From Neoechinorhynchus agilis (Eukaryota > Animalia > Acanthocephala), in assembly GCA_051530055.1 (NCBI GenBank), contig CM121341.1, positions 16,408,784 through 16,472,783 on the forward strand: a stretch of DNA of 64,000 nucleotides, given 5' to 3'. The position numbers and the translations under genes were made by a program. The notes beneath the pieces are model-generated. The model was not told the DNA's origin. It saw nothing but the letters and a program-made list of their open reading frames with translations, and made no database searches. Below, one piece after another: positions 36,977 through 63,499 of the stretch (its first letter is position 1; each line of letters begins with the position of its first letter).

Positions 36977-39069
36977 CTTAAATAAGATTATCACCAAGCC
37001 TTTGAAAATCAAGAGACAACTCAAGCCTTACTTTCAGTTTATTTTTCATCGTAAAGGATTTTGTAGCTCCATTAACTTTTAATTTCTTCTGTTTCAATAC
37101 ATTAAAGTCGTCGAAAATTCATCGTTTTTTCAACTGCGATTACCTTCCTTTGAAAAACAAGATATAATTTCAAACCGGAATTTAATCAAAGTGTAGGTAA
37201 GTTTGCAACTGATTAATATTTTATCATTTGTTATAACTTGCATTTAGTACTCGTTGCAGTCGCTATTGAAGTTAAAATCGATTGAAAGATCCGTGAATAA
37301 AAAATTCTATTTTAAATTTTAGATCTCTAACATTAATATGTTTTAGTCTTTAAATTCTTCGAGCAACGTCAAACCGCGGTCATAATTCATTTAGTCAATA
37401 GCAAAAACAAAATTAAAGTCTTTTACTTATACGAATAACAAATCATTAAGGATACATCTTTAAACGAGCGAGTTGCTATCGTCGACTCCTAAAGACCCTA
37501 ACAGAACATCATATTCCTCAAAGGAGATTCGCTTTTTGTAGAAGAATAATACGTTAACAAGAAAACTTTATCGGCTCAATCGACGCAATTAACGTGGAAA
37601 TTCAGACAGTTGAAAATTTCATTGAAAAATATACGGAATCTAGTGAAAGCTGCCGATAAAGATTATTCGACTGGCGGATACGTTCGAGTCTTTGGATTTT
37701 CTCTCACGATACTATCAAAAAGTTGGCGCATTGCAAAAAGCGATTTGGAATATTCATGAGGCGAACATTTAGATTTATAAGTGTTTTAAAAACAAGGCCC
37801 CAAAGAGCGAGTGATAAATTGAATTTTCAAATTATAAATCTTTTTGTCGCAAATAATTTTAGGTTAAAATTAGGTAAGAGATCGATTCCGCATTTTTTAT
37901 AATCCACTCAATCAGTTCGATCTTTATTTTCAAAATTAAGAAGGTTGTGCCAACGGCTAATGAAATGAGTTCGTCGCTTAAATAAACCGATTTATTCAGA
38001 ACGGAAATCGTGACTTTTGGCGGACGCTTCCACTGTGAGGATGGAATCTGTTTTAAAAATGCTTAATATCTCGACTATAATTAGGAGCATTTCCCTTAAT
38101 TTCACGAAAAGGTTCAGTGAAGCGAAAGTCTCTTGTGGAAGCGTCGTGAGAGCTCCTTGAATTCGCATTCGTAATTGAAAACTTACAAAAGTTCTTGTTC
38201 GTTTGAGTGCCAAATATGAAATTCGAAATCAATTCGACTTCAAAAACCAATATCACATTTTTAGATTTTCTTTTATTTTTAAGTGCCCTCTGAAGCGTCA
38301 AATTAAACGCTTAAATCGTCATCGGGCGTTGGCTTGAAGCCGAAACTTACTGTTATTGTAGTGAGAAATAATAAAGTTATGTAGCTTTTTCGCAATGAAA
38401 GTTCGTAGGCGAAAACAATGCTCTTTGCAGAATATTCACGAAATGATTTCTCTCCTAAGAACCAGAGGAAAACCTCCTAAGTTATGACGCTCAATCGAAA
38501 ATATTTCCTAGCGTTGGGGAAAACATTGTTCACATAGATACCCACTCGCAAGATTTTTGTATCGTTTTTTTCAAATTCGTTAATTACATTATTTGCGAAA
38601 TTTCAGTGAACTAAAAAACATAATTTGTAAACAATAAAACTCAAAAATTGATAAAGTAAAAAGTAAGGCAGGAATTAAAAGCGATTAAATTTATTAATTT
38701 TCTTGTAAAAAATGAATAGACTGAGTGGAGAATGCTTTTGTACCACTAAATAGTTTTATATTCAAAGTTTATATTTTTTATAACTGCGCTAAACTAGACT
38801 TTAACACTTATAAATATCGAACTTGATTGCATTACACAGATAAATGAGCTGCTTCGCTGTTTTGACTTTCGATAAACCATTGATTTTTCGCTTAATCACT
38901 TTGTTAACTTCAGCGAAGAATTGTTCGATATTCAGCTTTCGGGTTAGAAAAATTGATCGAAATAACATCATCTTTAACAGTAGTAATTTTTGTTTTCTTA
39001 GAAGTCTTCCAATTTTGCTTCTTCTAATGTTACTGTTATGGAACCACTGACACTGATTGCCTAAATTTC

Positions 39070-39625
39070 GGCGAAGGAAATTATGGACCATCAAGATCGT
39101 CTAAATATTGCGAAGATACAAGCTTTCTACAATTTAAGTAGTGAATTCCTTAAAACCCAATGGAATACAACTAACGTCGAAAAATATTGACGCACCACTA
39201 TTTCGTCAAGATCGAATATTTTGTCAAAACATTTCTTGACTTCATTCGCAAATCAAAATTCGATGCATCTTCGAATTAATCGCCATTGGGCGCCTCAACT
39301 GTTTCAAGATGCAATTGTATTCTCGGATTCGTCGAGTTTTATGTACGGCTATGGCATTGCAGCGCTTATTCCAATTTTACAAACGATTTCGTTTTCAATC
39401 GGGTCAATAACCGCGGATCTTTTAGTAAGGTAAAAATGGTTATTGGAAACGGTATATTCGTTGCTGATAACTTCATTGAAGCTTTAGTAACTGCACATTC
39501 GTTCAGATTTTGAATAAAAAGCGCATGATATTTCGCAACTATGTTAATGCTTCACTGTACTTCTCTCTTCTCTCAACCTGCCATCAAGGAGTAATCTCTT
39601 TTAATTTGCCACGTTTATTTCATTG
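39070..39625 (+). pseudogene. Captured GLUT promoter plus 5' CDS fragment (copy of ~28308-28884)
   Basis: GGCGAAG..ATGGACCATCAAGATCGT through CGTTTATTTCAT is collinear with the intact transporter locus, with frameshifts and stops. Confidence 0.9.
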
Positions 39626-40240
39626 CTACGCCATTATTCATACCTGTTGTTTTGCTTAAAAATTGATCAAATAGTAAAGGATTAGTGTATCAAATCGCTC
39701 AACTTGAATATTCTGTACTCGTGTTTATTAATGCTGTATTTTGCTTCTAGTTTTCTGCAACTCTCGTGCCCGTATTCATATCCGTTTTTTCTTCAATAAA
39801 TATCCGTCAAATATTTCAAATTTTATTTCGATTTGGAGCGATGGCATACTAATTGAAAAAGTCTTTTACATGGAAAACGTACACTGATAAATTTTTAGCT
39901 TAGTAAGCGTCGGCCTTTCGCCACTGCCCAATGAAGACTCAAGGTGCTGTCTAGCATCTCAGAGGGCGTTAAAGAAAATAAAGAAAATGGGGAACGTCGG
40001 TTAAGTTCTTGTGGGCAATGTTTTGCCAGGTCAGAAATTATTGCGGTGTGAAATCTAACTCGTTCAAGTCTGCATTCCCGCACTTTTGCGACCTTTATAA
40101 AGGAATATTGAGCATTTGGAATCGATTCAAGAGTTCGTTTATAGAATCTCGTTGGGTGGATTGAAAGATGTTGTTTGTAATTACATCACCGACGTCAGTT
40201 TGTAGACTTAGTGTTTTAAAATTATTGAAAAAATTAGCTC

Positions 40241-40600
40241 ATGAAATTGCTATTTCCTGGACAGAAGATGTCTGAAATCGTTCTAAATTTGATATTGGGA
40301 GTGCCAATGATAAGATCAAAGGTCCAAAAAGATTCTGCTCCAAATTTTACAGAAGTGAGTAACTCATCTTCACTATTGAACGTTCTTTATCTGTCGCAAG
40401 GGCGCCATGAAAAAGGGAGTCGTTAAAAATTGGAAAGATATTACTTCCATTTATCAAATCTTTTCTAAAAATTATTTGGACATTGATCCTCGGACGAGCA
40501 AAATTATATTGACCGGACGCTTTTTAATCTCCTAAAGTACTAATTGTGCTGAAATCTGAACAATGCTTAGAAGCTTCCGAATTCCATTAGCAAAAACCGG
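40241..40600 (+). pseudogene. ACTR2: Arp2-like (actin-related protein 2) gene fragment with retained 46-nt intron
   Basis: MKLLFPGQKMSEIVLNLILGVPMIRSKV, intron GTGAGT...GCAAG (40355-40400), then MKKGVVKNWKDI and NYLDIDPRTSKIILT. Compare Arp2 LVGRPIIRSTTKV..YPMENGIVRNWDDM..LNIDTRNCKILLTE. Confidence 0.75.
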
Positions 40601-42859
40601 GAGATAAAAGTATAGGAATTGTTGATTGAGCACTTTCAATTTAGAGGCTTCTATATAGAAGTTCAAGCTACTCTCACATTATTTGATCAGGGAATATCTA
40701 CGGAAATCGTCGCTCACTCACGTCTGTCCAGTTTTTGAGAACTTTTGTCTGAATCATTTCGTTAAAAGGCCTGATATCGCCGATGTGGACATTACGTTTA
40801 TCTTACAAAGGTTCGCGTTTTCATCGCGATGAAATTAAGATTTGATTCTTTTTCTGTTTAGCTCCATCGATCGCGGGGTTACTCGTTAAATCCTTAAGCT
40901 GATTTTGAAACAACTCCAACGACAAAGTCGACGAAATGTCGGTCTTCATAAGGTTTGAGGCGGGTTGGAAGGAATGCCTTGTACTTCCATTTCAATTAAA
41001 TCTGTATCTTAGCTTTTTAACGGACGAGATATCAGACTTTCCTATGAACATTTTAAAAGTAGACAAAGTCGCTTATCAGCGATTAGCCATGTTTATGCGT
41101 TTCTCTCCTCGAGCATTTTAAATCGATTTTCGATGCGAAGTTGAGGATGCTTGTCGGTGATAATATCTTGTATTTCTTGGAAGATCAATGTTACGAATGC
41201 CACAAAGAAAACAGTCGATATGTGGACCAGTAACTCGGATTACTAAAAGAAGGGCTTTTTCATTGTTGTTTACAGAAACTAAAATCCTAACTTTTGAAGA
41301 GTTTTTGATGTTACAAAGTATGAAACGGTATATTTTTCAATTAAAACCTTTATTTTCGTTGGTTTCATTTTTGAGCCATACTGCTCAGAAAGCGCAATCT
41401 GCCGTCTTGGAAGGCCGAAGTCATTCAAAAGACTCGATCACATCCGGGAACAGGCCGAGACCGTCCCTGCATCACCGTAGACAGATCCGCTACTCCTCAT
41501 CCTCGCAGATTGTGGCTTGCTTTCTGTTGGTGCAGAAAGCTGAGATTCAAACTATAGAAATGATCGCTATGAGTATGATCTCGGGCTTCCACAATAAAAT
41601 ATCTCTTCTTACCAACAAACGTCTCTAGGAAAAGAAACTTCCGTTGAATATACGCGACATACATTGATAGGCTTGTGTCACTCTTCAAAAACAGTTCGTA
41701 AATTTTGATTTGAATTAGTGGTTAACTGCACATTTGGAGCCATTCAACAATCATTGTTCGAAGCTAAAATTTTATATTGTTGAATGATTCAGTTGAAAGT
41801 ACGAATGATTCACCATTCTATTACGTGGTAGCAATGTAGTACAGTAATTAAAATTTACATCTTTGTCAGAAATCAGCGCATAACGCCAAAAATAACGAAT
41901 CAGATTGTTCGATTTTCTGTGCAACTAGCGATTAAAAAAATTACTCTCGGATTTTTCATAATTAACAGATATTCGGTCGAAATCATAAGGAATGCGATTC
42001 GAGCAATAGGAGCTCTTTCCTTACGAATTCACATTCACTGTATTTTCATTGGTGCATAGTCGGCTAAGATCAAAGGGTTGTTATTATTTCAGTATCTGTT
42101 TGTTTTTAGCCAATAAAAGTACAGGTTAATGCACAAATCTTTTATAACCAAAGAAAATTTTAATATGTCCATAGGATACCATTCGAAAGATTAAAATTTA
42201 TTTGATTTCTTCAAGAAAGTCGTCATAATGTTCTATGATGTACAATGCACATCTCAAATCAATTTATAAAGAGACTACATAGTTCGGAAAGGTATCAATA
42301 TCGACAAATAACTCATATAAAAGTACGTTCAGACGATTGGTCCATAACACACCGGTTATTAAAATCATAAATGGTAGCTTTGATTTTGAAATATCATTCG
42401 AGGTTTATGTCGAAGCAGTTTTATCAGAATTGTAGGAGTTTTCACACATCGAATCGCAGTTTAACTTCGATGAATTTGGCAGCTTCACGAGTTCTGTAAC
42501 AGGAATTAAAATTTCGAAAGTAAACTTATAGGGGTGTGCCCGTTCCCCTTGGTCGTGCCTCGGACAGATCTTGTGATTACACGATCAGGAGGCGTACTTA
42601 AATTTTTTTGTCGCAATCTCAACTTAATGAAGACGTCGGATATGGCCAGGATTTGTTGAGAATTCATCAAGAGTTCCGCACTCGAGGACGGCGCCAGTAC
42701 GCAAGTAGCGTCTATTAACATTGGCACATTAACTGGAAATACATAAGAGCTTGACAGGCTGTCAGAAAGGAGATGTATCTACTAGTTGTTTCACCAATGT
42801 TCGCTGTATAACAAACTTCTTTAATTAAATCAACGAAGAAGATAGGATGGCGAACGATA

Positions 42860-43050
42860 AGGAGAATAGCGTGGTAGTACTGATATTGAAAAGGAAGGAT
42901 AGTCCAGAAGATTGCTGCAATTCTCGCTCAATCAGACCATTAAATATCTCCGGCCGCATTCTTGGTATGCGGATAAGAAATTTCGCAAAAAGCGGCATCA
43001 AACAGATAGATTTCGTTAAAGAATGTGGAATTAAATACAGAGTTTTTTAA
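42860..43050 (+). mobile_element. RTE-like non-LTR RT fragment
   Basis: VVVLILKRKDSPEDCCNSRSIR...QIDFVKECG resembles the P.FKKGD..DC.NYR.I and QxGF regions; highly degenerate. Confidence 0.45.
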
Positions 43051-43449
43051 AAACTGTTGTCGTCCGGTCATTGAGGTTAAAGATAAATTCTACAGTTTCG
43101 CAAGCATTTTTTGTATTTCCTTAAGGGGCAGCTTTTGAAATTGATATTTTCAGTTACAAGAATGACCCCTTAGATTCGAGAAGCGAAAATCTTATTTAAT
43201 CTGTCAAAAATTTCACATTGATTGTAAAGTAAAGATCTTCGATGTTTGTAATAAATGTATTTGAATTTTTATTGAACGCAGACGTCCTACTCATTTTGTG
43301 CTAAGCTTATTGAAGCAGAATTCTTATATTAATCGCGAGTCTCCCTTTAAGAACTTTTCGTTCTAAAAAGAGCTTTACGAATCGAGGGCATTATTATAGA
43401 CATCGACTAAGACCGGATTCGCCAGTTTTAAGCAAAATCTCCATTGTAG

Positions 43450-43920
43450 AAGTGTTGCGAGCGCTCCTATGATTCGGATTCGTGATTGCAAATCGAAACT
43501 TAGCAAAAGTACCTGTGCACTTCTGTACCAAATTAAATAGATATGAAACTCGACATGAATTCGACTTAGAAAACCAATGTCACCTTTCCAGATTTTCTTT
43601 TCTTTAATTTTTAAGTGCCATCTGAAGCGTCAAATTAAACGCTGAATCGTCATCGGGCGTTGGCTTGAAGCCGAAACTTAGTGTTAAAGTAGTGAGAAAT
43701 AATAAAGTTATGTAGCTTTTTCGCAATGAAAGTTCGTTAGCGAAAACAATGCTCTTTGCAGATTGTATACGAAATCATTTCCGCTCAAGCGAAAACATTT
43801 CCCAGTGTTGGGCATGTCAAAAACATTTGTTTTTTATAAATATGTTTATTACTTTATCTGCGAAATTTCAGTGAAATAAAACATAATTTTTAAGAAATAA
43901 CAGTAAAAACTGTCGCCTTT
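43450..43920 (+). repeat. Partial copy of the mosaic repeat
   Basis: CTGAAGCGTCAAATTAAACGCT..CATCGGGCGTTGGCTTGAAGCCGAAACTTA..GCGAAAACAATGCTCTTTGCAGA is shared with 38290, 55460 and 62155. Confidence 0.85.
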
Positions 43921-43929
43921 ATTAAAATT

Positions 43930-45750: not shown

Positions 45751-45891
45751 TATTTCTCTCCTTTTTAGTCTTTCTCTCTTTACGCCACTTCACCAGCCCC
45801 TAAAACTGCAAGGAACAAGTTGCTCTTAACAGGTCTTTGTCTAAAAGAGAATTTCTAAAAATTAGTCCATTACCGGTTGAAGATAACAAAA

Positions 45892-47649: not shown

Positions 47650-50055
47650 AAGGAACGTAGATATAGAGAGGTGCGATGTCGAGGGAGAATGAAACGATTT
47701 ATAATTGCGAGTGTTGTGCTCGTGTGAAAAGGGAGCGATATGTGGTAGAAATTGTGGTGGTAGGGTTGATAGGCGTTTTGTTTGCTTTATGAAAATGGTA
47801 TAAAGGTATTCAACGAGAGGATTAAAGTCAGCTTTGCATATTTTAGATGCTCTTTTATGAAGCATTTCAAGACGACGTATTTGAGATTTGCATAAGTTGC
47901 AAAAGACGGGATAACCGCGAGGGAGGGTAAAATAAAGCTGTAGTAAAATTTGTAGAGATCGGTTGAAGGGATTTCTAAATGTCGGAGGCGTTTGAGGAGA
48001 TAAATTTTAAGGGTGTTGAGCTCGAGGGAGAGAGTGATGTGCGAGTCCCATTTCAAATTTGATTGAAATTGGATACCCAGAATTCTTAGAGAGGTTACTC
48101 GTAGGATGTCATTTAGAAGCTCAGGGGAGAATGTGGGGTTGCAGGAGAATGAGGAGATCATTTCGAAGAATTTAGAGAAATTCAGGTGGGGTTTGTGATT
48201 GGTGCAGAAATCTTTTATGTGTGTGATTTCGTTAGAGGTTAAGGAGAGGGAGAGGTGTGGTGGTGAATGGGTGAGATCGTCGGCGTATAAGAGGAGTTTA
48301 GAGTGAGAGGAAAGAGGTTTGAGGTGGTCTAGGAAAATGATAGAGAAGTGGTGACAACACAGCACTTCGAGGAACGCCTTTGGTGAGGGATAGGCTGGTA
48401 GAAGAAGTAGAACGGCAGCGAATGTATTGTTTGCTATTGTGAAGATAAGATTCGAGCCAGCGGATCTGCCACAAGTGGAGACCAAAATCATAGCACGCCC
48501 GGAGAAGGAGTGAGTGGTCCACTGAGTCGAAAGCTTCAGGTAAATCACGTTGAATGAGACGGGTGACGTGGGAGGGACTATTGTCGAGGTTGCGTAGAAG
48601 AATGTCATAAATGCAAAGTAGGGCATCTACTGCAGAAAATTTGGGTCGGAAGCCAAATTGTAGGGACGGTAACTTTTCGCGGAGAAGTGAAAGAAGGTGA
48701 GATTTAAAACATCTTTCGATGATTTTTGAAAGAGTGGGAAGAATGGAAATTGGACGGAATGATTCGGTGGAAATAGGATATCCTTTTTGAACAAGGATAA
48801 CTTTAGCAGTTGTGGGTCGATGAGTTCGGAGATGATGTAGTGAAGAGCACAGTGTGGGATTTCGGATTGAGAGGACGAATTTCGAGGTATTTCCTTGAGA
48901 TGCTGCAGTACTTCGTATGACGAAACTAAAGGAAATATCGGCGAATTGACAAAAGTTTCAGGTGCGGGCGTGAAAGATTGTGGTGTGTCTATTGTGAAGC
49001 AGTGATTGTAAATTGAGTCAGGGCAGGGTTCTGATAAATGGAATCTAGAACCTGTTTAAATTCGGTGGAAGTCAAATTAGGGAAGGGATCCGGGTGGTGT
49101 AGACCAAGAGAGTCCGTGACGGCCAGCCACCATGTGAATTGCTACCCGAACGAATTTTAGAGGAACGAAAGATTTTGCGGACGATAAGCATTTTGTTAGA
49201 GCTATTTGTGAACGTGGAAAGTCTGGGTGGTTATTGCGGTGGGCCTCAGAAGATTGCTTTTGAAGAAGTTTGTCCAGGGGGTTGCGGTTGGGGATCCTAA
49301 TTAATTTCTTGGGAATTGCCGAAGCTTGGGATTTTTCTATGACTGAGGTTAGGGAGGACATGACCAATGTAGGGCCATTTGTGTTGTCAGCGTGGTATGC
49401 ACGAATATTAGAGTTCAACAATTTTATAAAATTGTGGATGTGATGATACTTTTATCCCAGACGGGTAAACAGGGACATTTTATACGCTGATCTGGGATGG
49501 AATGAGTAATGATGGAGGGGTAATAAGGGCAGAAGAGTGGTCAGAGTTCGCGGAGGGAGTTTAGAGGCGGATGAGTAGGCGTCGATATTTGTGAACACTT
49601 TGTCAATGTGAGCGTCAAGACGAATTGGGAAGTCAATAAGTTGACGCAACTCGGAAAAAGGGTAGAAGATGAAATATATTATTGAAGTCCCATGCAATTA
49701 AGAAATGGTGCGAAATTGGGGAGTTTATGAACTCCATCATAGATTCAATTTGGAACAGGGAGGACTCAGGTTGAGAATGCGGAGGACGATAGACGCCAGC
49801 AATGGTGAATTCTCTAAGGCCATTTCTTAGAGGAGCTGAGAATTGGTCTGCGATGAATTCTAAATCGGGGTTTTGAGAAGAGCTTGTAGGAGATAAAGAG
49901 TAAGGTAATGATTACCGTACGTAAATTGAGACCCCCCTCCTGGGCGGTCACCGCGGTGTGTATGGAAGGAAGAGTACCCGGGAAGGATGGCTGAATCGCT
50001 GTTAAACAGGGTAAGCCACTTTTCTGTTAAGATGACGCCGTGGGACAGTGAATAG
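47650..50055 (-). mobile_element. Decayed L2/CR1-like non-LTR retrotransposon (APE and RT remnants)
   Basis: DHSLLL..WLESYL..LTKGVPRSAVLSPLL, LLYADDLT and RILGIQFQSNLKWDSHI; APE remnant ILTEKWL..LPGYSSFHTHRGDRPGGG near 49950-50035. Confidence 0.85.
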
Positions 50056-52012
50056 TGTGACCGAGTCGCTAGTAGACATGTTCTATATTCTACACAAAAC
50101 CGAACACACACACCTACACATATACGCGCATGCAGTTACTACTGTTTATCACCCGATCGATGGCATGATGGCATCATGCCCACTATAACATTTCGCCTTT
50201 TTTCTTCCTCAATAGCCATCGTATGGCAGTTTGGGCTTCCTCCGAATCCTTTGACTCCTGCGCGGCATAATCTTGATTTCTTCGACTGGTTCTTTCACTG
50301 ACTGTTGTGGATTTTCTTCATCGTTTTCTACTTCTAAATCCACCATCTTTTTAATAAGCCTTTTCTCCCCGGCATCTTCGTTTCCCTTTTTCTCCACATC
50401 TATACTCTCATTGGTCGTTATATCCTCAACTTCTCTATGCCTGATGTAATCCGCATGACAGCGTCGCTCTTGGCCATTCTCTTCTTCGAGCTGGTACGAA
50501 ACAGGTCCTTGAACTTTCGTGATGCAGCCGCTTCTCCATTTATCTTTTCGCTCATGCTTAAACCATACCGGCTCCTCATGTTTTAACGTGACCAACCTAT
50601 TTCCCACTGCCGATTTCTCCTCTCTGGCTCGAATTTTCTCTTCGACTCTTGCTTGTGTGCTTGGTTTCATATTGTCAAATATCGTCCGTAAGCGTCGACC
50701 AAACATTAGCTCCGCCGGTGTAATTCCCGTCGTTGTGTGAGGAGTGTTCCTATACGTGTACAAGAATTGGTCCACGTTTTCCATCTTTATTCCTTTTCCG
50801 GATATCCATGTTCGTCGTTTCAGCGTTCTTATGAACCTCTCGGCTAAGCCGTTAGTTCTAGGATGATATGGACTAGCTTTTATATGTTTGATTTAAAATT
50901 CGCTGCAAAACCTTGAAAACTCATTCGAAATAAACTGTGGCCCATTGTCTGACACAATTGATTTCGGTGCCCCGAATCTGCAGAAACACCTCCTTAGACA
51001 TCGTATGACTTGCGTGGTCGTCGAATTTCGACCTAGCAACCATACCTCTGGCCATTTTATGTTCGTATCGACCAGAATTAGGTATGTATCGCCATTTACT
51101 GGCCCCGACAAGTCAAAGTGTACTCTTTCCCATGGTTCTGCAGGCCAATACCAACTTAATAAAGGTACTTCCCTTTTGTTTTGCCTATTTGTTTGGCACA
51201 GTTCACACATCGCGATCATTTGTCTGATCTCTTCCTCCATCTTAGGCCAAAACACATAATACCGACTCATTGCAATCATTGCATCCCTTCCGGCGTGTCC
51301 TGCATGTAGGCGATCCAATACGCACCTTCTCAAATAACCAAGTCTTTGATTCTATCATCCACGGCTTTCAACTCATCATCAATCTCTTTTGAGAAAAAGT
51401 TGCATCCTCTTGCAGCTCCTCGCAAATCAGCCACCCATTGTGCATGTGTTTCGCCTTCTTGTTTATTTTTCGAATTGAAAATGTACCTGGCCAATATTTC
51501 CGGCACCTCAGCTTTGTAATATTCTTCCACTAGCCGGATAATATCCTTATATGCGAACTTCGCTATCTCCTGTGCTGCCGTCAATTTTTAAATCAGCTTG
51601 TATGTTTCGGCACCGACCCATGCAAGCATATTTGCCTTTTTGGTTCCATCTTCGATCACTCCATTAGCTTCCATATACTGGTTCATTTGTTCAACATATT
51701 CTGCCCAATCCTCTTGCTCCGGCTCGTATCGTCTGAATGCATTTATCCCTCTCCTCTGTCCATGTGCATCCAATTCGCCTTTTCCGTGCATTGATTTCAT
51801 GAGCTCCATCATTGCTGCGTTCTGCTGCTCTTGCTGCTTCTGTTGCTGCTGCATCCACTCCCTCATCATGTTCGCTCGATCCATTATGATCTGCTGCAAC
51901 ATTTGAGCACCCTCGTCGCCAAATGTGACCGAGTCGCTAGTAGACATGTTCTATATTCTACACAAAACCGAACACCGATCGATGGCATGACGACATCATG
52001 CCCACTATAACA
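50056..52012 (-). mobile_element. Ty3/gypsy (Mag-like) LTR retrotransposon, internally deleted (gag remnant joined to integrase; no PR/RT/RH)
   Basis: TG..CA LTRs at 51924-52012 (89 bp) and 50056-50190 (135 bp). PBS TGGCGACGAGG at 51921-51911. Purine tract GAGGAAGAAAAAAGGCGAAA next to the 3' LTR. Gag DWAEYVEQMNQYMEAN; integrase LHAGHAG..WPKM..CELCQ, IVSDNGPQF, YRNTPHTTTG.TPAELMFGR. Confidence 0.93.
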
Positions 52013-52670
52013 GTGAGCGTCAACACGAGTTGGAAAGTCAATAAGTTGACGCAACTCGGAGAAGGGTCGAAGAGGAAATAGTTTATTGAAGTCTCCAGCA
52101 ATTGAGAAATGGTGTGAATTTGTTTAGTTTATGAGCTCCATCATAGAGTCAATTTGGAGCAAAGAGGACAAAGACGAGAGACAAGAGGGTGATAGACGCC
52201 AGCAATGGTGAATTCTCTAATGCCATTTCTCTGTGATGAGTTCTAGATCGTGGTTTTGTAAAGAGGTCATGAGAGATAAAAAGTATGGTAGCGATTGTCG
52301 TAAGCCCTCCTGGACGGTCCTCGCGGTATGTATGGAAGGAAGAGTACCCCTGAAGGATATCTGAATCGCTGTTGAAGGGGGTAAGCCACATTTCTGTTAA
52401 GATGACTACGTCGGCTTTTGAGGTAGATGAAATCAGTGAAATTTCATCTAGTTTATGAAAGAGGCTACGAGTATCGGAGTAGAATACGGCGGGGAAGGGA
52501 ATTTGGATTTCGGAAAACCGGGGGTGGAAATGAGGGAGATTTGGGTTGCGTTGCTTGTTGCGGGTGGAGGATTAAGGGAGGAATCGTTACAAGATGCTGA
52601 TATAGAACGATTGATTAACAAAAAAGAGAGAAGTCCGGGGGCGAATCGAAAATTTGAGTTGAAATGAGTT
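52013..52670 (-). mobile_element. Second L2/CR1-like APE segment (paralogous to 49608-50040)
   Basis: KLDEISLISSTSKADVVILTEMWL..LQGYSSFHTYREDRPGG; nucleotide similarity to the left flank of the LTR element. Confidence 0.8.
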
Positions 52671-53229
52671 GAAGAAATGAGCTTGGTGTTGAGTTTTTGT
52701 ATAGATCAGCTACATAACTTTAGCTTTTTTCTTTGAGTGAATATCATGAAACTTCAAACTTTATTGTTCTTCTTTAAAAAAATGTCAATTATGTTCTATG
52801 TTTTGGACCGATCAAAAGCTCCTTTGTCTAAGTACCCACAGAAATCGCTTTAATTTCTTTATGAAGAGACTTTTTATGCTTTAGAAAATTCAAATTTTTT
52901 TATGAGCGTGTTAGTGGAATAGAAGGATATAGATTATCTGAGGATCTTATAGCTCAATTATTATAAGACGAAATAAAGTTTTTCAATAAACAAGAAAAGT
53001 TCATCGGTATTAGAAACATTAAAATGTAAAAAGCAACTAAACAAAGATGCTGTTTTTGAGTAGTAGAGCGATAATTATTTACTTGATTTGGGAAAAAGAG
53101 TGTTTAATGTAGAAGAGCTGGGAGATTGACCTTTGTGATTTTACGGGCGCCGGTGGAGTTGCACGTAACCAAAGAAGCTGGGAAGTCGCTTACTCTTTGA
53201 TTTTTTGGGATGGGGGAGATGTTCGTGGG

Positions 53230-53575
53230 TTCCCCCGATTGAAATCAAAGACACAATTCCGTACTCTCTCGAAATCCCTGGAGGTGCCGCCAGTGCAGCG
53301 GAAGGGAGGAAGGTACGAAAATATAGGGATTTAGAGAGGCCCAACTATTTTGTCCCCTTCGGAGTAAAGACGTATGGAGCGCTTGGCAGCTCGGCACTCA
53401 CTCTGCTCAAGGATCTCCCGAAGAAATTGAAAGAAACGACCGGCAACACACGAGCAGGTCTATTCCTGCGACAAAATATCTCGCTCCCAGTACAACGAGG
53501 CAATGCTGCTAGCGTGATAGCGACAGCCGAGGAAGGAGAGAAGCTCCAATTTTGCAGACAGTGGTGGTTGTATCA
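53230..53575 (+). mobile_element. CRE-clade 3' fragment, same subfamily as the 10865 element
   Basis: IPYSLEIPGGAASAAEGRKVRKY..FVPFGVKTYGALGSSAL..FLRQNISLPVQRGNAASV. Followed by an L2-like RT remnant (LSLNLSKT..RVLG) at ~53660-53880. Confidence 0.85.
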
Positions 53576-54099
53576 GATCTTAACCCCGTCACCCCGTTCA
53601 GAGTTGTTTAAAAGAAAACCGGATCTTCTTCGGAAAAAAAATAAACAATGCATAAGCTGCCTCAATAATTGCTTGCCACGAATGAATCTCTCCCTCAACC
53701 TTTCCAAAACCTTGTGCATTTTTAAAACTAGGTCCTGCCGTGTCCGCAGGGATCTAAAAATATTTTTTAACAATTTAGTTGACCCCCACAATATTGCGAG
53801 CTCTTACGCCAGCACTCCATTAAAAATGCGAGTGCTTGGTCACATGTTCACTGTCAACCTTGCAATAGGAATCCTTTGGTGATTGAAATTTTTTTAAGCT
53901 TTTAGCTAAACCACCCACTATTATTTTTTCATTGCCATGAAAAATGACTTCTACAGTTTCACCTTTTAAATGCGAATTTGCTTTGGTAAATATTTCGCTC
54001 TGCCAAGGTCTTTGCGAATCGACAACATCAATGGGGACTCGCTAGTTTCAGGATATTTCTAGCTTTTTGTCTTAAATCAATCGCTCCTGTCGACCTTAG

Positions 54100-54674
54100 C
54101 ACTCAAATTCGCGATGTCGGTGGATACTTCGGGTGGACACGGTCACGTCTGTCGCCAGTCCGGTGGCGGGTATGCTCGCCACGCCGAAATTAACTCGGTG
54201 ATTATTCGAGCCCTCAATACGACACACGCACCGAATCTGCTCGAACCGAGTCACCTCTGCAGACTCGACGGTCGAAGACCGGATGGGGAAACTGTGTTCC
54301 CGTGGCGAGAAGGGAAATCCCTTCTCTGGGACGCTACTTGTGTGGACACCCTTACTCTGTCCAATCTAAGACATTCCTCAAGGCGCGAAGGAGGTGCTGC
54401 AATTGCCGCAGAGGAACTTAAGCGCGGGAAGTACGCGGAGCTCTTGAGGGCACATCACTTCGTCCCTTTCGGCGTTGAGACGCTCGGTGCCTTCGGTGCT
54501 GAGGCCAAGAACTTTGCGGCGGATCTTTCAAGGAAGATGAGGATCGCAACCGGAGAACCAAGAGCAGGAACGTTCTTCCTGCAAAGCATAGGTCACGCGA
54601 TTCAGCGCGGCAACGCTGCAAGTGTCCTTGCGACGGTGCCGAGTGGTAAAGAGATGGATCTGGGAAGTTTGTGA
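54100..54674 (+). mobile_element. CRE-clade 3' fragment (different subfamily, open frame)
   Basis: GHGHVC..RHAEIN..LEPSHLCRLDGRRPDG..WDATCVDTL..KRGKY..FVPFGVETLG..IQRGNAASVL. Confidence 0.88.
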
Positions 54675-54999
54675 AATATACATCTTTGCTTGAAAATTTT
54701 TTTTGGTAATGGATTGAAATCCCGAAAAGAAATTTTAGAGGTTGCGTCTAATGGGCCTAACAAAGTTCAGAAAAAATTCGCAAGCGTGACTACGAGGGCG
54801 AATGAATAACGCTGGAAAATTTATGGCGCGATTTTACATTTTTACAACTTCCAACTTTTTTGTAAAGTTACTTAAAATCAGTTCTATGATTCTTCATTTT
54901 CATGTCGTTATTTATTTCATGCTAAAATTAGAGCAGGGAACAATTCCATATTTTTGATAACCCAGTAACACAGTTCGGCCTTTTCTTTCCAAATCGAGA

Positions 55000-57900
55000 A
55001 GGTTGTGTCAGTGGCTGGTAAAATGAGTTCGCCGTTTAAATCAACCGATTTATTCTGAACGGAATAAATCGTTAATTTTCTCGGACAATACCATTCTTTA
55101 AAAAGGACGGTTGATATTTCGATTATTTTTATTAGCATTTCTCCTAATGCTAATAACAGTTTTTGTGTGGCCACATTAAACAAGTAAAACTCTCTCGAAA
55201 AAGTGTTGACAGCGTTACTTGGATTCGGATTCGCGATTGCGATCAAAACTTAGTAAAACGAAAAGGTTCAGTGCTGCTACTTCACTGAAGCAAACGTTCT
55301 CCATGGAAGCGTCGCGAGAGCTCCTTGAATTCGCATTCGCAATTGAAACTTTGCAAAAGTTCTTGTACGTTTTAGTGCCAAATGTAAAATTCGAAATCTA
55401 TTCGACTTCAAAAAACCAATATCACATTTTCAGATTTTCTTTTATTTTTAAGTGCCCTCTGAAGCGTCAAATTAAACGCTTAAATCGTCATCGGGCGTTG
55501 GCTTGAAGCCGAAACTTACTGTTATAGTAGTGAGAAATAATAAAGTTATGTAGCTTTTTCGCAATGAAAGTTCGTTAGCGAAAACAATGCTCTTTGCAGA
55601 ATATTCACGAAATGATCTCTCCCCTAAGAACCAGAGGAAAACCTCCTAAGTTATGACGCTCAATCGAAAATATTTCCTAGCGTTAGGGAAAACATTTTTC
55701 ACGTAAATACCCACTCGCAAAGTTTTTGCATCGTTTGTTTTTCAAATTCATTAATTACATTATTTGCGAAATTTCAATGAACTAAAAAACATAATTTGTA
55801 AACAATAAAACTCAAAAATTGATAATACCTTAAATTAAAAACGATGGAAGTAAAAAGTAAGGCAGGAATTAAAAGCGATTAAATTTATTAATTTTCTTGT
55901 AAAAGATTAATAGACTGAGTAAAGAATGCTTTTGTACCACTAAATAGTTTTAGATTCAAAGTTTATATTTTTTAGAACTGCGTTAAATTATACTTTAACG
56001 CTTATAAGTATCGAACTTGATTGAATTACACAGATAAACGAGCTACTTCTCTGTTTTTCGTTTAATCGCATAGTTAACTTCAGCGAAGAATTGTTTGATA
56101 TTGAGCCTTAGGGATAGAAAATTTGATCGAAATAACATCATCCTTAACAGTTGTAATTTTTGTTTTCTTAGAAATCTTCCAATTTTGCTTCTGCTAATGT
56201 TACAGTCTTTATTGCTGTCAACGGAACAAGACATTCTTGGGACAAATTTTCGATATGAGTTGTTATATTCTGCTCGTTAAACAACATTGTCCACTTGGCG
56301 TGCCTCGTCGGAAGTCGGATCATTGGAATCATCTTTCTTGGTTTCCGTTTCACCACCTTCAGTTGTCGTACAAGATGACAAATTTAAAGCACTGCTCCCG
56401 TCCTCTTCATTTGCGCTTTTAAAACGATGTGTTAACCATTCAATAAATGAATTCAAACGTGAAAATCTAACCTATCTTCAGAATCGGTGTCTTGTCAGTC
56501 CGAAAAATGCCTCACGTCCAATTTTGCGTTATCGCTCGATCAGACTGCACTTTCTCGCATCTTAAAGTTCTTCGAATGCGTGCTTGATGGGCGGATAAGA
56601 AATGTGGTGGATTGTAGCATCGATCAGATTGGTTATCTTAAAGAATATGGAACCACTGACACTGCTTGCCTAAATTTCGGCGAAGGAAAATATGAACCAT
56701 CAAGATCGTCTAAATATTGAGAAGATACAAGCTTTCTACAATTTAAGTAGTGAATTCCTTAAAACCCAATGGAATACAACTAACGTCGAAAAATATTGAC
56801 GCACCACTATTTCGTCAAGATCGAATATTTTGTCAAAACATTTCTTGACTTCATTCGCAAATCAAAATTCGATGCATCTTCAACTTAATCGCCAGTGGGC
56901 GCCTCGATTGCTTCAAAATGCCATTGTATTCTCGGATTCGTCGAGTTTTATGTACGGCTATTGCATTGCAGCCCTTATTCCAATTTTACAAACGATCTCG
57001 TTTTCAATCGGGTCAATAACCGCGGATCTTTTAGTAAGGTAAAAATGGTTATTGGAAACGATATATTCGTTGCTGATAACTTCATTTCTACGATTACGTT
57101 TCAACGTTAGCCCAATCAAGACCTTCCACTTTTGCTCCCGTACCTCGATTTTCCAGTAAAAAGCACACACCCCTATCATCCTTCAACGACTACATTAAGC
57201 ATCTCTCGCCTCGTAAATTAACTCCTCCTAAACCCCTCTTATCCTTGCTTCCACTCATCTCTCATCTGCCTAAAACCACTAATCCTCACCCTACCAAATC
57301 TGGAAATTTTCGCTTCGCCCCTCAAAAGCGAAAAATACCTTGGACGCTCAAACTACCTCACCTCTTACCACCACCTCTTCAACTCCCAATATCCTCTTGC
57401 CCCCCCGACTTCATCCCGCATACGCAGTTCCCACCCACACTCAAATCACCCTTACTACAGTGTCCACCCATGAATCCCTTACCCCCGAACTACCCCATCA
57501 GTCAACTCCCATCCCTTCTCTCTCTGCACAGCTTCAACCCTCTCCGTCAGTGTCCACCCCTCATGTCCCTTCTAAACATCCCTTTCCAATAATCTTTTAT
57601 TCTAACATCCGCAGCCTCCCCCCCAAACTGGATGAGCTCCGTATAGTTGCCTCTTCTTGCAACGCCGACATCCTTGTAATTACGGAAACATGGCTCTCAC
57701 CCCATAGCAAATTATCTGCCTTCCTTCCAAACTTCAAAGCTTTTCACCTCACAGGGGACTTCCGAAACGGGGGAGGCATATCGGTCTTCATCCGCGCCTC
57801 TCTCCCTTACCATTGCTCTTCACCCTACCTTTTCATCTCCGACGATCTTGAATGGCTTCACATCCAACTTCATCTCCCCCTCCGTAATGGCGAACGTGAG

Positions 57901-60670
57901 ATCTCTATCGCTGGCCTGTATCGCCCTCCTTCCTCAAACATCCCCAACACACTTCAACAACTAGATCACCTATTCACTGTCCAACTTTCCACCTCCTCAG
58001 ATCACTTCATCATATTGGGCGATTTTAACAAACTGCCGATCCCGCCCTCGCTCTCTCATCTCTCCAACCTCCTCCCGCCTTGATAAAATTTTCTCAAACA
58101 TCAGACAGTATTCGTGCACTACTAAACTTCCCCCGATCGCCTCGTCTGACCATTGTTCTATCCTTCTCACCCCCACATCACCTCAAAAACGTTCCTTTTC
58201 CGACCCCTACGTTGTCTGGGATAAACGTGATCATCATACCCAATCCTTTGCTGCATATGTCAATTCTCTTATAACGCAACACGCTCTACCATCTTTTGCA
58301 CCGACCGCTCGATTGCAATGGGCTCTTTGTTAAATCTAATAGAATCTGCGATGAAGGCCTCCTTTCCGCGCAAAACATTACGAATCTCGAACTGCGGCCC
58401 TCCATGGTTCACACCTTTTCTAAAAACCCTTTAAATGCAGGTCACCAAAGCTTTTCGGTAAGGTAATCTTGCTTACCCCTCGATCCACTCCACACTGACA
58501 AAACGCATCCGTAGAACTCGCAAATTACCCCCTCCACAATTTTCTCCCTTCATCTCTAAATACTCTTCCTTCGTAAACACCCGTAACCCCAACCGTTTTC
58601 ATCCCCCTCTCACTTGTACCACCCTCTACCAAAAATCTTTCTTCCCCCAAGCCCAATCTTTCCTTAATAACCGGAGAACAAGGAATGACTCCTAATCCGT
58701 CATCTCCTTTACAAAACCTCCGATAGAACATCCGTCATCCAGACACCTTTCAGCAAAGATAGATACTGGCAAGTGCGTGGATCGTGCATTTTGTTATTTA
58801 AATAAAACGTTTTTATTTATTATATAGAAGGTAAAAATTGTTATTGGAAACGGTATATCCGTTGCTGATAACTTTATTGGAGCTTTAGTAACTGCACTTA
58901 GAATAAAAAGCGCATGATATTTCTCAACTATGTTAATACTTCACTGTACTCCGCTCTCGCTCTTCTCTCAACCTGCCATCAAGGATTAATCTCTTTTAAT
59001 TTGCCACGTTTATTTCATTGCTACGCCAATATTCATACCTGTTGTTTTGCTTAAAAAATTGATCAAATAGTAAAGAATTAGTTGATCAAGTCGCTCAACT
59101 TGAATATTCTGTACTCTTGTTTTATAATGATGTATTTTGCTTGTAATTTTCTGCAACTCTTGTGACCGTATTCTTATCCGCTTTTATCCTCAATAAATAA
59201 AAAACTAAAGGATTAATCCGCTAAATATTTCTAGTTTTATTTTGATTTGGAGCGATGACATACTGATTGAAAATGTCTTTTACATGGAAAACGTACACTT
59301 ACAAAAAAAAATTAGCCTTGTGATTTACCGACACGTTCAAGTGCGGTTTTAACACTTTAACAGTAAGCCTCGGCCTCTCGCCACTGCCCAATGAAGACTC
59401 AAAGTGCTGTCTAGCATAACAGAGGGCGTTAAAGAAAATAAAGAAAATGGGAAAGGTCGATGAAGTTCTTGTGGGCAATGTTTTACCAGGTCAGAAATTA
59501 TTGCGATGTGAAATCGAACTCGTTCAAGTCGGCATTCCCGCACTCTTGCGATCGTTATAAAGGAATATTTAGCATTTGGAATCGATTCAAGAGTTCGTTT
59601 ATAGAATCTCGTTTGCTTATTCAATGGGTGGATTGAAAGCTGTTATTTGTGTTTGTAGACTCTTAGTATTTTAAAATTATTGAAATAATTAGCTCATGAA
59701 ATTCCTGGACAGACGATGCTTAAAATCGTTCTAAATTTTATTTTGGGAGCGCCAATGATAAGATCAAAGGTCCGAAAAGATTCTGCTCCAATTTTTACAG
59801 CCGTTAGTAACTCATCTTCACTATTGAACGTTCTTTCTCTGTCGCAAGGACGCCATTGTCATAGAGGAAACAAATGATCAACGCCCAATTCTTGGTATCC
59901 GATATCCAATGAAAAAGGGGTCGTTAAAAATTGGAAGGATATTGTTTCTACTTATGAAAACTTTTTTCTAAAAATTATTTGGACATTGATCCTCGGACGA
60001 GCAAAATTATATTGACCGGACGCTTTTTAATCTCCTAAAGTACTAATTGTGCTGAAATCTGAACAATGCTTAAAAGCTTCCGAATTCCATTAGCAAAAAC
60101 CGGGAGAAAAATGTAGGAATTGTTGATTGAGCACTTTCAATTTAGAGGCTTCTATATAGAATTTCAAGCTACTCTCACATTATTTGACCAGGGAATATCT
60201 ACGGAAATCGTCGCTCACTCACGTCTGTCCAGTTTTTGAAAACGTTTGTCCGAATCATTTCGTTAAAAGACCTGATATCGCCGATGTGGACATTACGGTT
60301 TATCTTACAAAGGTTCGCGTTTTCATCGCGATGAAATTAAGATTTGATTCCTTTTCTGTTTAGCTCCATCGATCGCGAGGTTACTCGTTAAATCCTTCAG
60401 CTGATTTTGAAACAACTCCAAGGAGTAAGTCGACGAAATGTCGGTCTTCATAAGATCTGGGCGGGTTGGAAGGAATGCCTTGTACTTCCATTTCAATTAA
60501 ATCTGTATCTTAGCTTTATAGCGGACGAGATATCAGATTTTCCTATGAACATTTTAAAAGTAGACAAAAGTTGCTTATCAGCGATTAGCCATGTTTATGC
60601 GTTTCTCTCCTCGAGCATTTTAAATCGATTTTTGAGGCGAAGTTGAGGATGCCCATCGGTGATAATATCT
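55000..60670 (+). repeat. Gene-fragment mosaic repeat, copy 2 (longest; interrupted by an L2-like insertion)
   Basis: Collinear with 37950-41170. Contains an RTE RT remnant (YRSIRL..KFFECVLDGRIR..DQIGYLKEYGTTD, ~56510-56670), the GLUT fragment (56680-57087 and 58828-59020) and the Arp2 fragment (59695-60100). Confidence 0.85.
57088..58827 (+). mobile_element. L2/CR1-like element, internally deleted (APE plus C-terminal tail, RT core missing)
   Basis: IIFYSNIRSLPPKLDEL..ADILVITETWL..RNGGGI..GLYRPP..IILGDFN; C-terminal NTRNPNRF..TLYQKSFFP; AT-rich 3' tail with AATAAA near 58800. Confidence 0.85.
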
Positions 60671-60699
60671 TTGGCATAGAATTTACGTTACGAATTATT

Positions 60700-61250
60700 A
60701 TTTTATAGAATGACGAAAACCCCGTATATCCGATCTTAGTGAATCACTTTGAAAAAAGCGCAATGGAATCGATTGTGATTAAACCGGCCTTCTACAAGAG
60801 ATGCAAAGACGATTCTGATGGAAAACGTTGCTCTCCGTCTATCGACGATAACTAGCCATTTACGACACGAATTGTTATTTCATAGACCGACGAAAACACC
60901 ATTTTTGCGATCTTAGTGGATCAACTGGGAAAAAACGCAGTAGAATCTTACGCGATTAAATCGGTCTTCTACAAGAGATACGTAGATGATTGTTTTGAAC
61001 CAAGAACCAAAAAATTGAATTTATTCTACACAAACTGCGACACCAGAACGAAGTAGAAAAAGTTGAATAAAAATGTTAACGAATCAGTCAACTGTTCATA
61101 ACAATGATATATTCGCGATTTTGCCGGGTACGTATTCATTAAACATCTAAACCGCGAGCATAATCGAATCATATTCACCATGAATAGGTCCGATGAAAAT
61201 GGAAGGTTGCCGTTTCCAGATGTGTTGATTCAAAATAATGGGACACGAAA
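60700..61250 (+). mobile_element. Penelope-like RT fragment with an internal tandem duplication
   Basis: PILVNHFEKSAMESIVIKPAFYKRCKDD, then a second copy AILVDQLGKNAVESYAIKSVFYKRYVDDCF, then HLNREHNRIIFTM..ENGRLPFPDVLI. Confidence 0.75.
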
Positions 61251-61689
61251 TCATTTGTTACATTGTCAGCTGATTTTCTCGACCGCATGTATATATTTCC
61301 TTTTTTATTGATGTGAATTATTCTAGCACTTTCGGCGGTCGGAGAAATTTTGTTTTACATCAGAGAAATGATATGACCACTTAAACTCTGATGAAACGTT
61401 AAGAGTTCGTACAGCCCTCCGGATCTTCGAATACCTCCATCCAGGGGGCGGGACTCATCTGTGAGTTTCTTCCCTTCTGCGGTATTTCGTCCCCTTTGGT
61501 TATGCCTGTTGAGCACACCGATTCCGTCTGCTGAATGAAATTTCAGCCCATAGATAAAAATTGTAAGCTTGACTAATAGAGCGAAGGAATAACACTAAAA
61601 AATCCATAGCCCGCATTGACATGTTTACAATTTTCCTAAAAACCCTTGTAAAACTAGCGAAAATCGACCCTATTATTTTTCATCATCTT

Positions 61690-63460
61690 CGTGTCAAATA
61701 ATTTAATGCTTAAATTAAGTAAGAGATCGATTCTGCGTTTTTTATAATCCAATCAATCAGTTCGATCTTTATTTGCAAAATTAAGAAGATTGTGCATACG
61801 GCTAATAAAATGAGTTCGTCGTTTAAATCAACCGATTTATTCAGAACGGAAATCGTGACTTTGGCGGACACTTCCAAATGTGAGGATTTAATCTATTAAA
61901 AAATACTTAATATTCGACTATATTAAGGAGCACTTCTCTTAATTTCACGGAAAGGTTCAGTGCTGCGACTTAACGGAAGCAAAAGTTATCTGGTGGAAGT
62001 GTCGCGAGAGCTCCTTGAATTCGCATTCGCATTCGCAATTGAAACTTTGCAAAAGTTCTTGTACGTTTTAGTGCCAAATATGAAATTCGAAATCAATTCG
62101 ACTTCAAAAAACCAATATCACATTTTCAGATTTTCTTTTATTTTTAAGTGCCCTCTGAAGCGTCAAATTAAACGCTTAAATCGTCATCGGGCGTTGGCTT
62201 GAAGCCGAAACTTACTGTTATAGTAGTGAGAAATAATAAAGTTATGTAGCTTTTTCGCAATGAAAGGTCGTTAGCGAAAACAATGCTCTTTGCAGAATAT
62301 TCACGAAATGATCTCTCCCCTAAGAACCAGAGGAAAACCTCCTAAGTTATGACGCTCAATCGAAAATATTTCCTAGCGTTAGGGAAAACATTTTTCACGT
62401 AAATTCCCACTCGCAAAGTTTTTGCATCGTTTGTTTTTCAAATTCATTAATTACATTATTTGCGAAATTTCAGTGAACTAAAAAACATAATTTGTAAACA
62501 ATAAAACTCAAAAATTGATAATACCTTAAATTAAAAACGATGGAAGTAAAAAATAAGGCAGGAATTAAAAGCCATTAAATTTATTAATTTTCTTGTAAAA
62601 GATTAATAGACTGAGTAAAGAATGCTTTTGTACCACTAAATAGTTTTAGATTCAAAGTTTATATTTTTTATAACTGCGCTAAACTAGACTTTAACACTTA
62701 TAAATATCGAACTTGATTGCATTACACAGATAAATTAGCTACTTCGCTGTTTTGACTTCCGATAAACCATTGATTTTTCGCTTAATCACTTTGTTAACTT
62801 CAGCGAAGAATTGTTCGATATTGAGCTTTATGGATAGAAAATTTGATCGAAATAACATCATCCTTAACAGTGGTAATTTTTGTTTTCTTATAAATCTTCC
62901 AATTTTGCTTCTGCTAATGTTACAGTCTTTATTGCTGTCAACGGAACAAGACATTTTTGGGGCAAATTTTCGATATGAGCTGTTGTATTCTGCTCGTTAA
63001 ACAACACTGTCCACTTGGCGTGCCTCGTCGGACGTCTGATCATTGGAATCATCATTCTTGGTTTCCGTTTCACCACCTTCGGTCGTCATAAGATCATGCT
63101 CATAGCCATCATTTCTATAGTTTGAATCTCAACTTTCTGCACCAACAGAAAGCAAGCCAAGGTCGGTTAAATTCTTGTATGCGTTGTTTGCGAGGTCAGA
63201 AATTATTTACAGAATTTGAGAAATATCATGCGCTTTTTATTTGAAATCTAAACAAATGTGCAGTTCCTAAAGCTCCAATGAAATTACTAGCTACGAATAT
63301 ACCGTTTCCAGTAACCTTTTTTATCTCACTAAAAGATCCGCGGTTATTGATTCGATTGAAAACGAGATCCTTTGTAAAATTGAAATAAAGGCTGCAATGC
63401 CATACCGTACAAAAAACTCGACGAACTCGAGAATACAATGGCATGTTGCAGCAGTCGAGA
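61690..63460. repeat. Gene-fragment mosaic repeat, copy 3 (direct part to ~63085, then rearranged pieces including an inverted GLUT fragment 63220-63460)
   Basis: 61690-63085 is collinear with copies 1 and 2. 63090-63158 is the reverse complement of 41512-41580. 63160-63210 matches 39995-40040 directly. 63220-63460 is the reverse complement of ~39290-39540. Confidence 0.82.
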
Positions 63461-63499
63461 GGGATTAATTCGAAAAATTTGGAGAAGTTCATTTAGAGT

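Follow-up and report, generated by a model that had tools for sequence, protein, structure and literature searches.

A local cluster of mosaic gene pieces on a chromosome of the acanthocephalan Neoechinorhynchus agilis

Four copies of a composite unit downstream of a GLUT gene

We analyzed a 64-kb window (positions 16,408,784–16,472,783) of CM121341.1, a 19.4-Mb chromosome in assembly GCA_051530055.1 of Neoechinorhynchus agilis (Acanthocephala). The window contains a GLUT gene and, ~9 kb downstream of it, four copies of a unit that is composed of pieces of three genes. The GLUT gene (28306–29958, plus strand; window coordinates are used unless a parent locus is named) is intronless and encodes a sugar porter of the major facilitator superfamily with 485 amino acids from the ATG at 28501 (Pfam Sugar_tr, 7e-66). 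The window has no N gaps, and neither tandem arrays nor tRNAs were found in it by a tandem-repeat scan and a tRNA scan.

When the window was aligned against itself with gaps allowed, matches with E-values down to 0 delimited copy A (37838–41641), the partial copy D (43430–43909), copy B (54769–60695), and the scrambled copy C (61552–63522). The original prediction, made from the sequence alone, had placed a multi-kb repeat at 37845–41170, 55000–60670, 61690–63085, and 43450–43920, and the self-comparison recovers it at essentially these positions. It had also called the repeat dispersed, a description that does not hold, as the copies seen are confined to 26 kb (37.8–63.5 kb of the window). 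The comparison at the DNA level covered the window and 42 kb from two further loci of CM121341.1, which carry the Arp2 parent (L002) and the parent encoding an IBR-domain protein (L003). In these 42 kb, no unit copies were found besides the parent genes and local partial Arp2 copies in L002. Protein searches with GLUT, Arp2, and X/Y queries (X and Y being segments of the unit described below) covered the annotated gene models of N. agilis and returned no further related model; this negative carries little weight, given that the copies in the window lack annotation as well.

The copies match each other segment by segment. Positions 37838–39036 of copy A correspond to 61685–62926 of copy C (89.6% identity), and positions 38113–39036 to 55281–56206 of copy B (88%). 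Further along, 39037–39477 of A aligns with 56646–57086 of B (96%), and 39427–41169 with 58828–60671 (85%). Copies B and C share 55258–56370 and 61947–63090 (93%), and copy D equals 38120–38646 of A (~81%). Set against the usual threshold for segmental duplications (at least 1 kb with at least 90% identity), B and C reach 93% over 1.1 kb, A and C 89.6% over 1.2 kb, and A and B 85–96% depending on the segment. When substitutions alone are counted, the identity between copies is mostly 90–99%.

Pieces of the unit and their parent genes

Three pieces of the unit have identified parents, all on CM121341.1: the IBR gene, the GLUT gene, and the Arp2 gene. The first piece, the X core, is copied from L003 10900–12224 in inverted orientation, an interval that holds the final ~170 codons of ACOME3_003932 together with ~810 bp of its 3′ flank. 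This gene encodes a 418-amino acid IBR-domain (RBR-type) ubiquitin-ligase-like protein and is located at 16,487,385–16,488,795 of CM121341.1, ~15–60 kb from the copies. When the open frames of the formerly unassigned parts were concatenated, ACOME3_003932 was the single protein match (79% identity, E 2e-31). The segments that the original prediction had described as exon-like, with no gene attached to them, can now be assigned to the minus-strand 3′ end of the IBR gene.

Copy B holds the longest IBR piece (55258–56530, minus strand; L003 12205–10900; 90.4% by blastn), with the 3′ flank and the last ~170 codons. The X core of copy A (38085–39036, minus strand; L003 12224–11224) reaches from the 3′ flank into the coding region, of which it includes the last ~61 codons, and is 88.1% identical over 1001 columns. 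In copy C, the X region spans 61552–63090 on the minus strand, of which 61928–63089 is the IBR part (L003 12224–11061, 91.8%). Copy D consists of X core only (43430–43909, minus strand), matches the IBR 3′ flank at L003 12175–11643 in two stretches (80.7 and 74.7%), and is followed by debris of long interspersed nuclear elements (LINEs). The inner breakpoint of the IBR piece therefore differs per copy, at L003 11224 in A, 11061 in C, and 10900 in B. Copy B is collinear with the parent, and A has therefore lost 440 bp (B 56207–56645) by deletion. In the codon alignment, the X core of B carries an in-frame stop at the position “VV*RAEY”. The ratio of nonsynonymous to synonymous substitution rates (dN/dS) against the IBR parent is 0.53 for B and 0.77 for A.

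The X core is contiguous in A, B, and C with a further stretch of ~250–490 bp, left X (37838–38084 in A, 54769–55257 in B), which has no match in L003 beyond position 12224. Left X is 87.5% identical between A and C and 65–74% identical between A and B, with the version of B being strongly diverged (60–75% to C and A).

The GLUT piece corresponds to 28306–28912 of the parent and consists of 195 bp of upstream sequence and codons 1 to ~137. An upstream region with the first ~130 codons of the GLUT gene had been proposed for the unit, and this is borne out by blastn, which aligns 28306–28884 with 39067–39623 of A at 77.6%, and by tblastn, which covers residues 1 to ~137. In copy A, a 30-bp filler and the GLUT 5′ pseudogene occupy 39037–39650 (plus strand), with the GLUT part starting at 39067. 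This piece is frameshifted, with tblastn matches in three frames, and shows 33 indel columns and a dN/dS of 0.97 against the parent (0.69–0.97 across the GLUT pieces). Copy B carries its GLUT piece in two halves on the plus strand. The first half (56676–57086) is 81% identical to 28306–28722 of the parent and 96% identical to A, and the second (58828–59045) matches 28676–28884 by blastn and residues 83–137 by tblastn, ending at codon ~137. In copy C, the GLUT piece is inverted (63216–63522).

The two halves in B are separated by a 1.74-kb non-long terminal repeat (non-LTR) retrotransposon insert (57087–58827, plus strand) with an endonuclease open reading frame (ORF) at 57340–58083 (Pfam Exo_endo_phos, 4e-12) and tblastx similarity to the LINE copies at 47.6–52.5 kb. 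The insert is absent from A and is a later insertion, because it is bounded by a 51-bp target site duplication (TSD; 57036–57086 repeated at 58828–58878). It is the only clear retroelement sequence within any copy. The TSD is unusually long, and the insert has an endonuclease region with little or no recognizable reverse transcriptase (RT).

Between its IBR and GLUT pieces, copy B has a filler (56531–56675), of which 56562–56652 weakly resembles only 42940–43030 (69% over 91 bp); fillers in the unit measure 30–145 bp. This filler is possibly what had been taken for a scrap of RTE-type RT. The scrap itself could not be confirmed: a six-frame Pfam search of copy A found no RT, no domain of transposable elements (TEs), and no transposase or RepHel remnant, and a search for RT in the B filler (~115 bp, 56531–56645) and in 42847–43050 gave neither a Pfam match nor a match to the RT regions of the LINEs.

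Region Y (~500–600 bp) follows the GLUT piece at 39651–40135 in A and at 59046–59647 in B, the latter being 81% identical to 39600–40178 of A. In A, it contains a minus-strand open frame at 39895–40083, which is longer when read from stop to stop, and the distance between the two copies is 0.113 (Kimura two-parameter (K2P) substitution distance). Of the minus-strand exon pair claimed here, the open frame is present in A and B. A word-indexed protein search with the frame found no homologs, and when 1.84 billion representatives were searched exhaustively, three repetitive proteins matched Y in several stretches, which we judge spurious. A stretch of ~100 bp from the IBR 3′ flank recurs inverted inside Y at ~67% identity (38265–38351 against 39902–39988 in A; 55428–55528 against 59354–59454 in B), and its X-side version is also found in D (43582–43690). 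This stretch may represent an old repeat of small size. As a candidate for terminal inverted repeats (TIRs), the pair in A was rejected, as 67% is too weak and its position too internal.

The last piece derives from Arp2. A search with a stitched translation identified the parent as ACOME3_004365 (CM121341.1 ~18,175,500–18,176,960), ~1.70 Mb from the window. Copy A contains a near-complete, unprocessed Arp2 pseudogene (40136–41641, plus strand) that matches L002 9491–10330, 10443–10500, and 10711–11256 by blastn. The alignment of 40157–41582 with L002 9491–11256 extends from ~20–40 bp 5′ of the true ATG through the whole gene to ~280 bp (or more) beyond the stop codon, with all exons and the short introns kept. 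In addition, the tail at 41351–41641 is 87% identical to L002 17279–17569, and the six-frame Pfam search of copy A gives weak Actin matches in two frames. The original prediction of an Arp2 fragment was thus right about the gene and, for copy A, too modest about its extent. The Arp2 pseudogene of copy B (59648–60695, plus strand; L002 9529–10334, 10443–10500, and 10702–10841) contains frameshifts and stops and is truncated inside the gene at L002 10841, whereas A reaches L002 11256. Because B ends in the middle of the gene, what appeared as a unit end at 41169/60671 is a breakpoint private to B and not the terminus of an element.

The ~50-nucleotide introns of the parent are retained in the Arp2 copies. 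Their translated stretches “..NLNNA*KL..SIS” and “VRVFI.MKL.FDSF..” are found at the corresponding sites of A and B, and according to the junction alignment the same holds for the first ~50-nucleotide intron, which follows the “MDINGSRVIVCDNGTG” exon. At the parent locus, L002 9478–10973 (~18.175 Mb) is annotated as two models of 105 and 274 amino acids, with the first coding exon (“MDINGSRVIVCDNGTG”, followed by the ~50-nucleotide intron) lying upstream of the annotated start. The Arp2 parent model thus looks split and truncated.

Two additional partial copies of the Arp2 3′ end are found near the parent, at L002 6365–6562 (last exon, 93.6% nucleotide identity) and L002 17068–17569 (3′ part and downstream flank). 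Small DNA-level duplications therefore recur in the N. agilis genome. The second partial copy sits between 754-bp direct repeats (L002 16100–16851 and 17593–18345, 98.9% identical), which might have arisen by tandem duplication or represent LTR-like repeats; no TG...CA LTR ends were found in them.

Copy C ends in a scrambled tail (63091–63522). It consists of 69 bp of inverted Arp2 downstream flank (63091–63159), a 49-bp direct piece of Y (63159–63207), and the inverted, older GLUT piece mentioned above. The tail ends at a TE with RT, as indicated by an RVT_1 match on the ORF at 63526–63804.

The interval between D and B (44–54.7 kb) is filled with debris of LINEs and LTR elements. A LINE 3′ end lies ~90 bp to the left of copy B, and no LINE is present at the left edge of A or C. 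Members of one LINE family are found at 10861–12689 (minus strand), 53205–53882, and 54114–54674 of the window, at L002 15128–15998, and at L003 12224–13676. The ORF of this family stops only ~4 bp before the 3′ end common to the LINE copies, and its C-terminal region (“...RGNAASV..AT...”) is conserved and has no Pfam match, with RVT_1 located just upstream at 12200–12556. On the minus strand, 50209–51947 holds LTR-type retroelement remnants (rve, Integrase_H2C2, and a gag-like ORF). The repeat flanking them (49608–50044 and 52013–52414, 77% identity) matches LINE endonuclease-like sequence by tblastx and is not clearly an LTR. The spacer between B and C (60681–60991) contains a local tandem duplication of 134 bp × 2 at 78% identity. 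Intact neighboring genes on the minus strand encode an SH2/ankyrin tyrosine kinase (19805–24421), a metallophosphatase (31073–32760), and a 455-amino acid product (35357–36976), for which Pfam gave no match on the two largest ORFs (225 and 184 amino acids) and none is recorded for the full product.

Copying mode and divergence

The retained Arp2 introns, the noncoding flanks that accompany the GLUT and IBR pieces, and the absence of a poly(A) tail or TSD at the copy boundaries together demonstrate that all three gene pieces are DNA-level copies and not retrocopies. The proposal of a chimera of genomic, non-retroposed gene pieces in mixed orientation was therefore correct. The hallmarks of processed pseudogenes (intron loss, poly(A), and TSD) are missing from the pieces, and those of unprocessed pseudogenes and segmental duplications are present, namely copying at the DNA level, copy-specific breakpoints with nested partial copies, and lost coding constraint. 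Judged from their stops, frameshifts, and dN/dS of 0.5–0.97 against the parents, all gene pieces are pseudogenized and predicted to be nonfunctional.

The pieces differ in their distances to the parents and to each other, here given as K2P substitution distances. The Arp2 parent is separated from A and B by 0.27, and the GLUT parent by 0.21–0.24. The inverted GLUT piece of C stands at ~0.20 from A and B and at 0.29 from the parent. For the X core, the distances among A, B, C, and the IBR parent are only 0.04–0.08, whereas copy D is 0.18–0.19 away from each other X copy and from the IBR parent; by this measure, D would be older than the X cores of A, B, and C. Between A and B, the distance is 0.04 in the GLUT part, 0.06 in the Arp2 part, and 0.11 in Y. 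Identity along the copies swings from 60–75% in the left X of B to 98–99% in a tract of ~600 bp shared by B (55358–55957) and C (62050–62650), which suggests a recent non-allelic gene conversion or re-duplication.

Had the pieces been captured in one event and then transposed, they would all show the same age. The layered distances therefore point to stepwise accretion, re-duplication, and gene conversion. In the order that they indicate, the GLUT and Arp2 pieces would have been copied early, followed by an early copy of X that is represented by D. X would later have been acquired or converted from the nearby IBR gene, after which the block would have been re-duplicated, with gene conversion continuing.

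Origin of the mosaic and comparison with known systems

Taken together, we consider it probable that the locus is a local segmental-duplication cluster, in which the repeat unit is a mosaic of unprocessed pseudogene pieces that arose by break repair or template switching and was then multiplied by unequal or non-allelic recombination. Pieces of three genes of the same chromosome would have been joined one by one, with short fillers, in a TE-rich and gene-poor interval. The joining likely proceeded by break repair or replication template switching, that is, by nonhomologous end joining (NHEJ) with filler DNA or by events of the type known as fork stalling and template switching or microhomology-mediated break-induced replication (FoSTeS/MMBIR). 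The mosaic block would then have undergone at least three local re-duplications (A, B, C, and the older D), presumably through unequal or non-allelic recombination. Later remodeling would account for the 440-bp deletion in A, the loss of the Arp2 3′ end and the LINE insertion in B, the inversion and scrambling of C, and the gene conversion or re-duplication between B and C. Neither transposition machinery nor element termini would be involved.

Several points weigh against this interpretation. The nucleotide search covered the window, L002, and L003, so that extra copies may exist elsewhere in the genome, and the protein searches are blind to unannotated copies, such as those in the window. 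With the window read forward, the IBR parent would lie ~15 kb right of copy C; with the window reversed (16,403,242–16,467,241 of CM121341.1), it would lie ~20 kb to the left of where the window starts. No template was found for left X, Y, or the fillers, so that the case for template switching does not include junction microhomology, its signature. Finally, the sequence stems from a MaSuRCA hybrid build of Oxford Nanopore (ONT) and Illumina reads from pooled worms (PMC12690905), and the 98–99% tract of B and C is known from this build.

The ends of the copies were examined for signs of a mobile element. Inverted-repeat scans of A and B with their flanks gave only AT-rich chance matches of 18–28 nucleotides (71–94% identity), none of them terminal, and the sole long inverted pairs in the window are formed by the inverted GLUT piece of C and by LINE tails. 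Direct repeats were not found beside A, B, or C, and the only TSD is that of the LINE insert in B. The boundary sequences show no common terminal motif in a search for shared Helitron ends (5′-TC and CTRR-3′). These scans bear out the statement of the original prediction that TIRs, TSDs, and Helitron-type ends are absent. Moreover, the ends of the copies differ, as the right end is at 41641 in A and at 60695, inside Arp2, in B, and the homology on the left fades at different points.

We consider it unlikely that the mosaic is the cargo of an unrecognized acanthocephalan mobilization route, either a terminus-poor non-autonomous element or a recurrently active template-switching hotspot at which sequence is still copied and converted, as in the 98–99% tracts. 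If such a route existed, more copies would be expected at other genomic sites, and the additional Arp2 fragments near the parent gene would stem from the same process.

It is quite unlikely that a non-autonomous, gene-capturing transposon family of the Pack-MULE/Pack-CACTA or Helitron type captured the pieces and spread them as a unit. Chimeras of gene fragments with introns, flanks, mixed orientation, and several copies are the typical cargo of such elements, and the Arp2 parent at a distance of 1.7 Mb implies at least one long-range copying step. However, TIRs, TSDs, and common 5′ or 3′ ends are lacking, the copy ends and inner breakpoints differ among copies, and all copies seen lie in 26 kb beside two of the parents. 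Furthermore, the ages of the pieces differ ~3–5-fold, which speaks against a single capture event, the six-frame Pfam search of copy A revealed no transposase or RepHel remnant, and the annotated proteome holds no related gene model elsewhere. Of the two possibilities raised at the outset, a gene-capturing Pack-MULE/Helitron-like family is thus not sustained, and its alternative, a duplication hub, is favored by the varying breakpoints, the lack of common termini, the scrambling of C, and the clustering within 26 kb near two of the three parents. Local copies, variable breakpoints, and no shared termini are for the most part the picture that the original prediction had set against its own transposon reading.

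A retroelement origin, by LINE 3′ transduction of read-through transcripts or by RT template switching between RNAs, is very unlikely. The region is rich in LINE debris, with a LINE 3′ end ~90 bp left of B and a bona fide LINE insertion within B, and the Arp2 copy is roughly transcript-sized, from ~20–40 bp 5′ of the ATG to a few hundred bp past the stop. This scenario conflicts with the retained Arp2 introns, with the inclusion of flanks that look non-transcribed (such as the inverted 810-bp IBR 3′ flank), with the mixed orientations, and with the absence of poly(A) or TSDs at the copy ends and of a LINE at the left edge of A and C.

That the copies are uncollapsed haplotypes or mis-joined contigs is very improbable, since, despite the pooled individuals, noisy long reads, purge_dups filtering against uncollapsed haplotypes, and Hi-C scaffolding of the assembly (which was annotated with BRAKER after RepeatMasker; PMC12690905) and the 600-bp B/C tract of 98–99% identity, the copies sit in different flanks of a gapless window and differ by 4–11% substitutions, many indels, distinct breakpoints, and a LINE insertion and an inversion that are each private to one copy, which exceeds allelic differences by far.

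The proposed local segmental-duplication cluster is of value chiefly for annotation and genome quality. The exons that had lacked an assignment are identified, the split Arp2 parent model is flagged, and ~12 kb of the interval can be recognized as a pseudogene mosaic that should be called neither genes nor a TE family. The locus also provides a small, well resolved case of stepwise gene-fragment accretion and re-duplication in the genome of a parasite that has received little study. Should such micro-duplications be common across the genome, paralog counts could be inflated or chimeric transcripts created.

Nothing that we found suggests a new mechanism, and several known systems offer a comparison. 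With the cargo of Pack-MULEs and Helitrons, the unit shares only its content, namely chimeric gene fragments in mixed orientation and several copies. In contrast to these elements, it has neither TIRs with a TSD of 9–10 bp nor 5′-TC...CTRR-3′ ends with a hairpin and an A|T target, its ends vary, and its copies are clustered.

FoSTeS/MMBIR produces complex rearrangements by replication template switching. Similar to such rearrangements, the unit links short segments from near and distant sites of the same chromosome, some direct and some inverted, by way of small fillers, as seen in copy C. No template was found for several of the partners in these joins (left X, Y, and the fillers), so that the comparison does not extend to junction microhomology. 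The individual pieces resemble unprocessed pseudogenes, as they keep introns and flanks, lack poly(A), contain stops and frameshifts, and show dN/dS values near neutrality. Unlike usual unprocessed pseudogenes, three unrelated pieces are fused here into one unit, which was itself multiplied.

Mosaic segmental duplications, or duplication hubs, have been described for the pericentromeric and “core duplicon” regions of primates. As in these hubs, unrelated segments copied at the DNA level are juxtaposed and re-duplicated locally in a TE-rich setting, with layered ages and gene conversion. The N. agilis locus differs from the primate hubs in the size of its pieces (0.5–6 kb compared with tens to hundreds of kb), in an identity mostly below 90%, in showing no evidence of an expressed “core” gene, and in its acanthocephalan host. 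It behaves like a mosaic segmental-duplication hub in miniature, built from unprocessed pseudogenes, and adds a new example of this known kind of structure from a phylum that is poorly studied.

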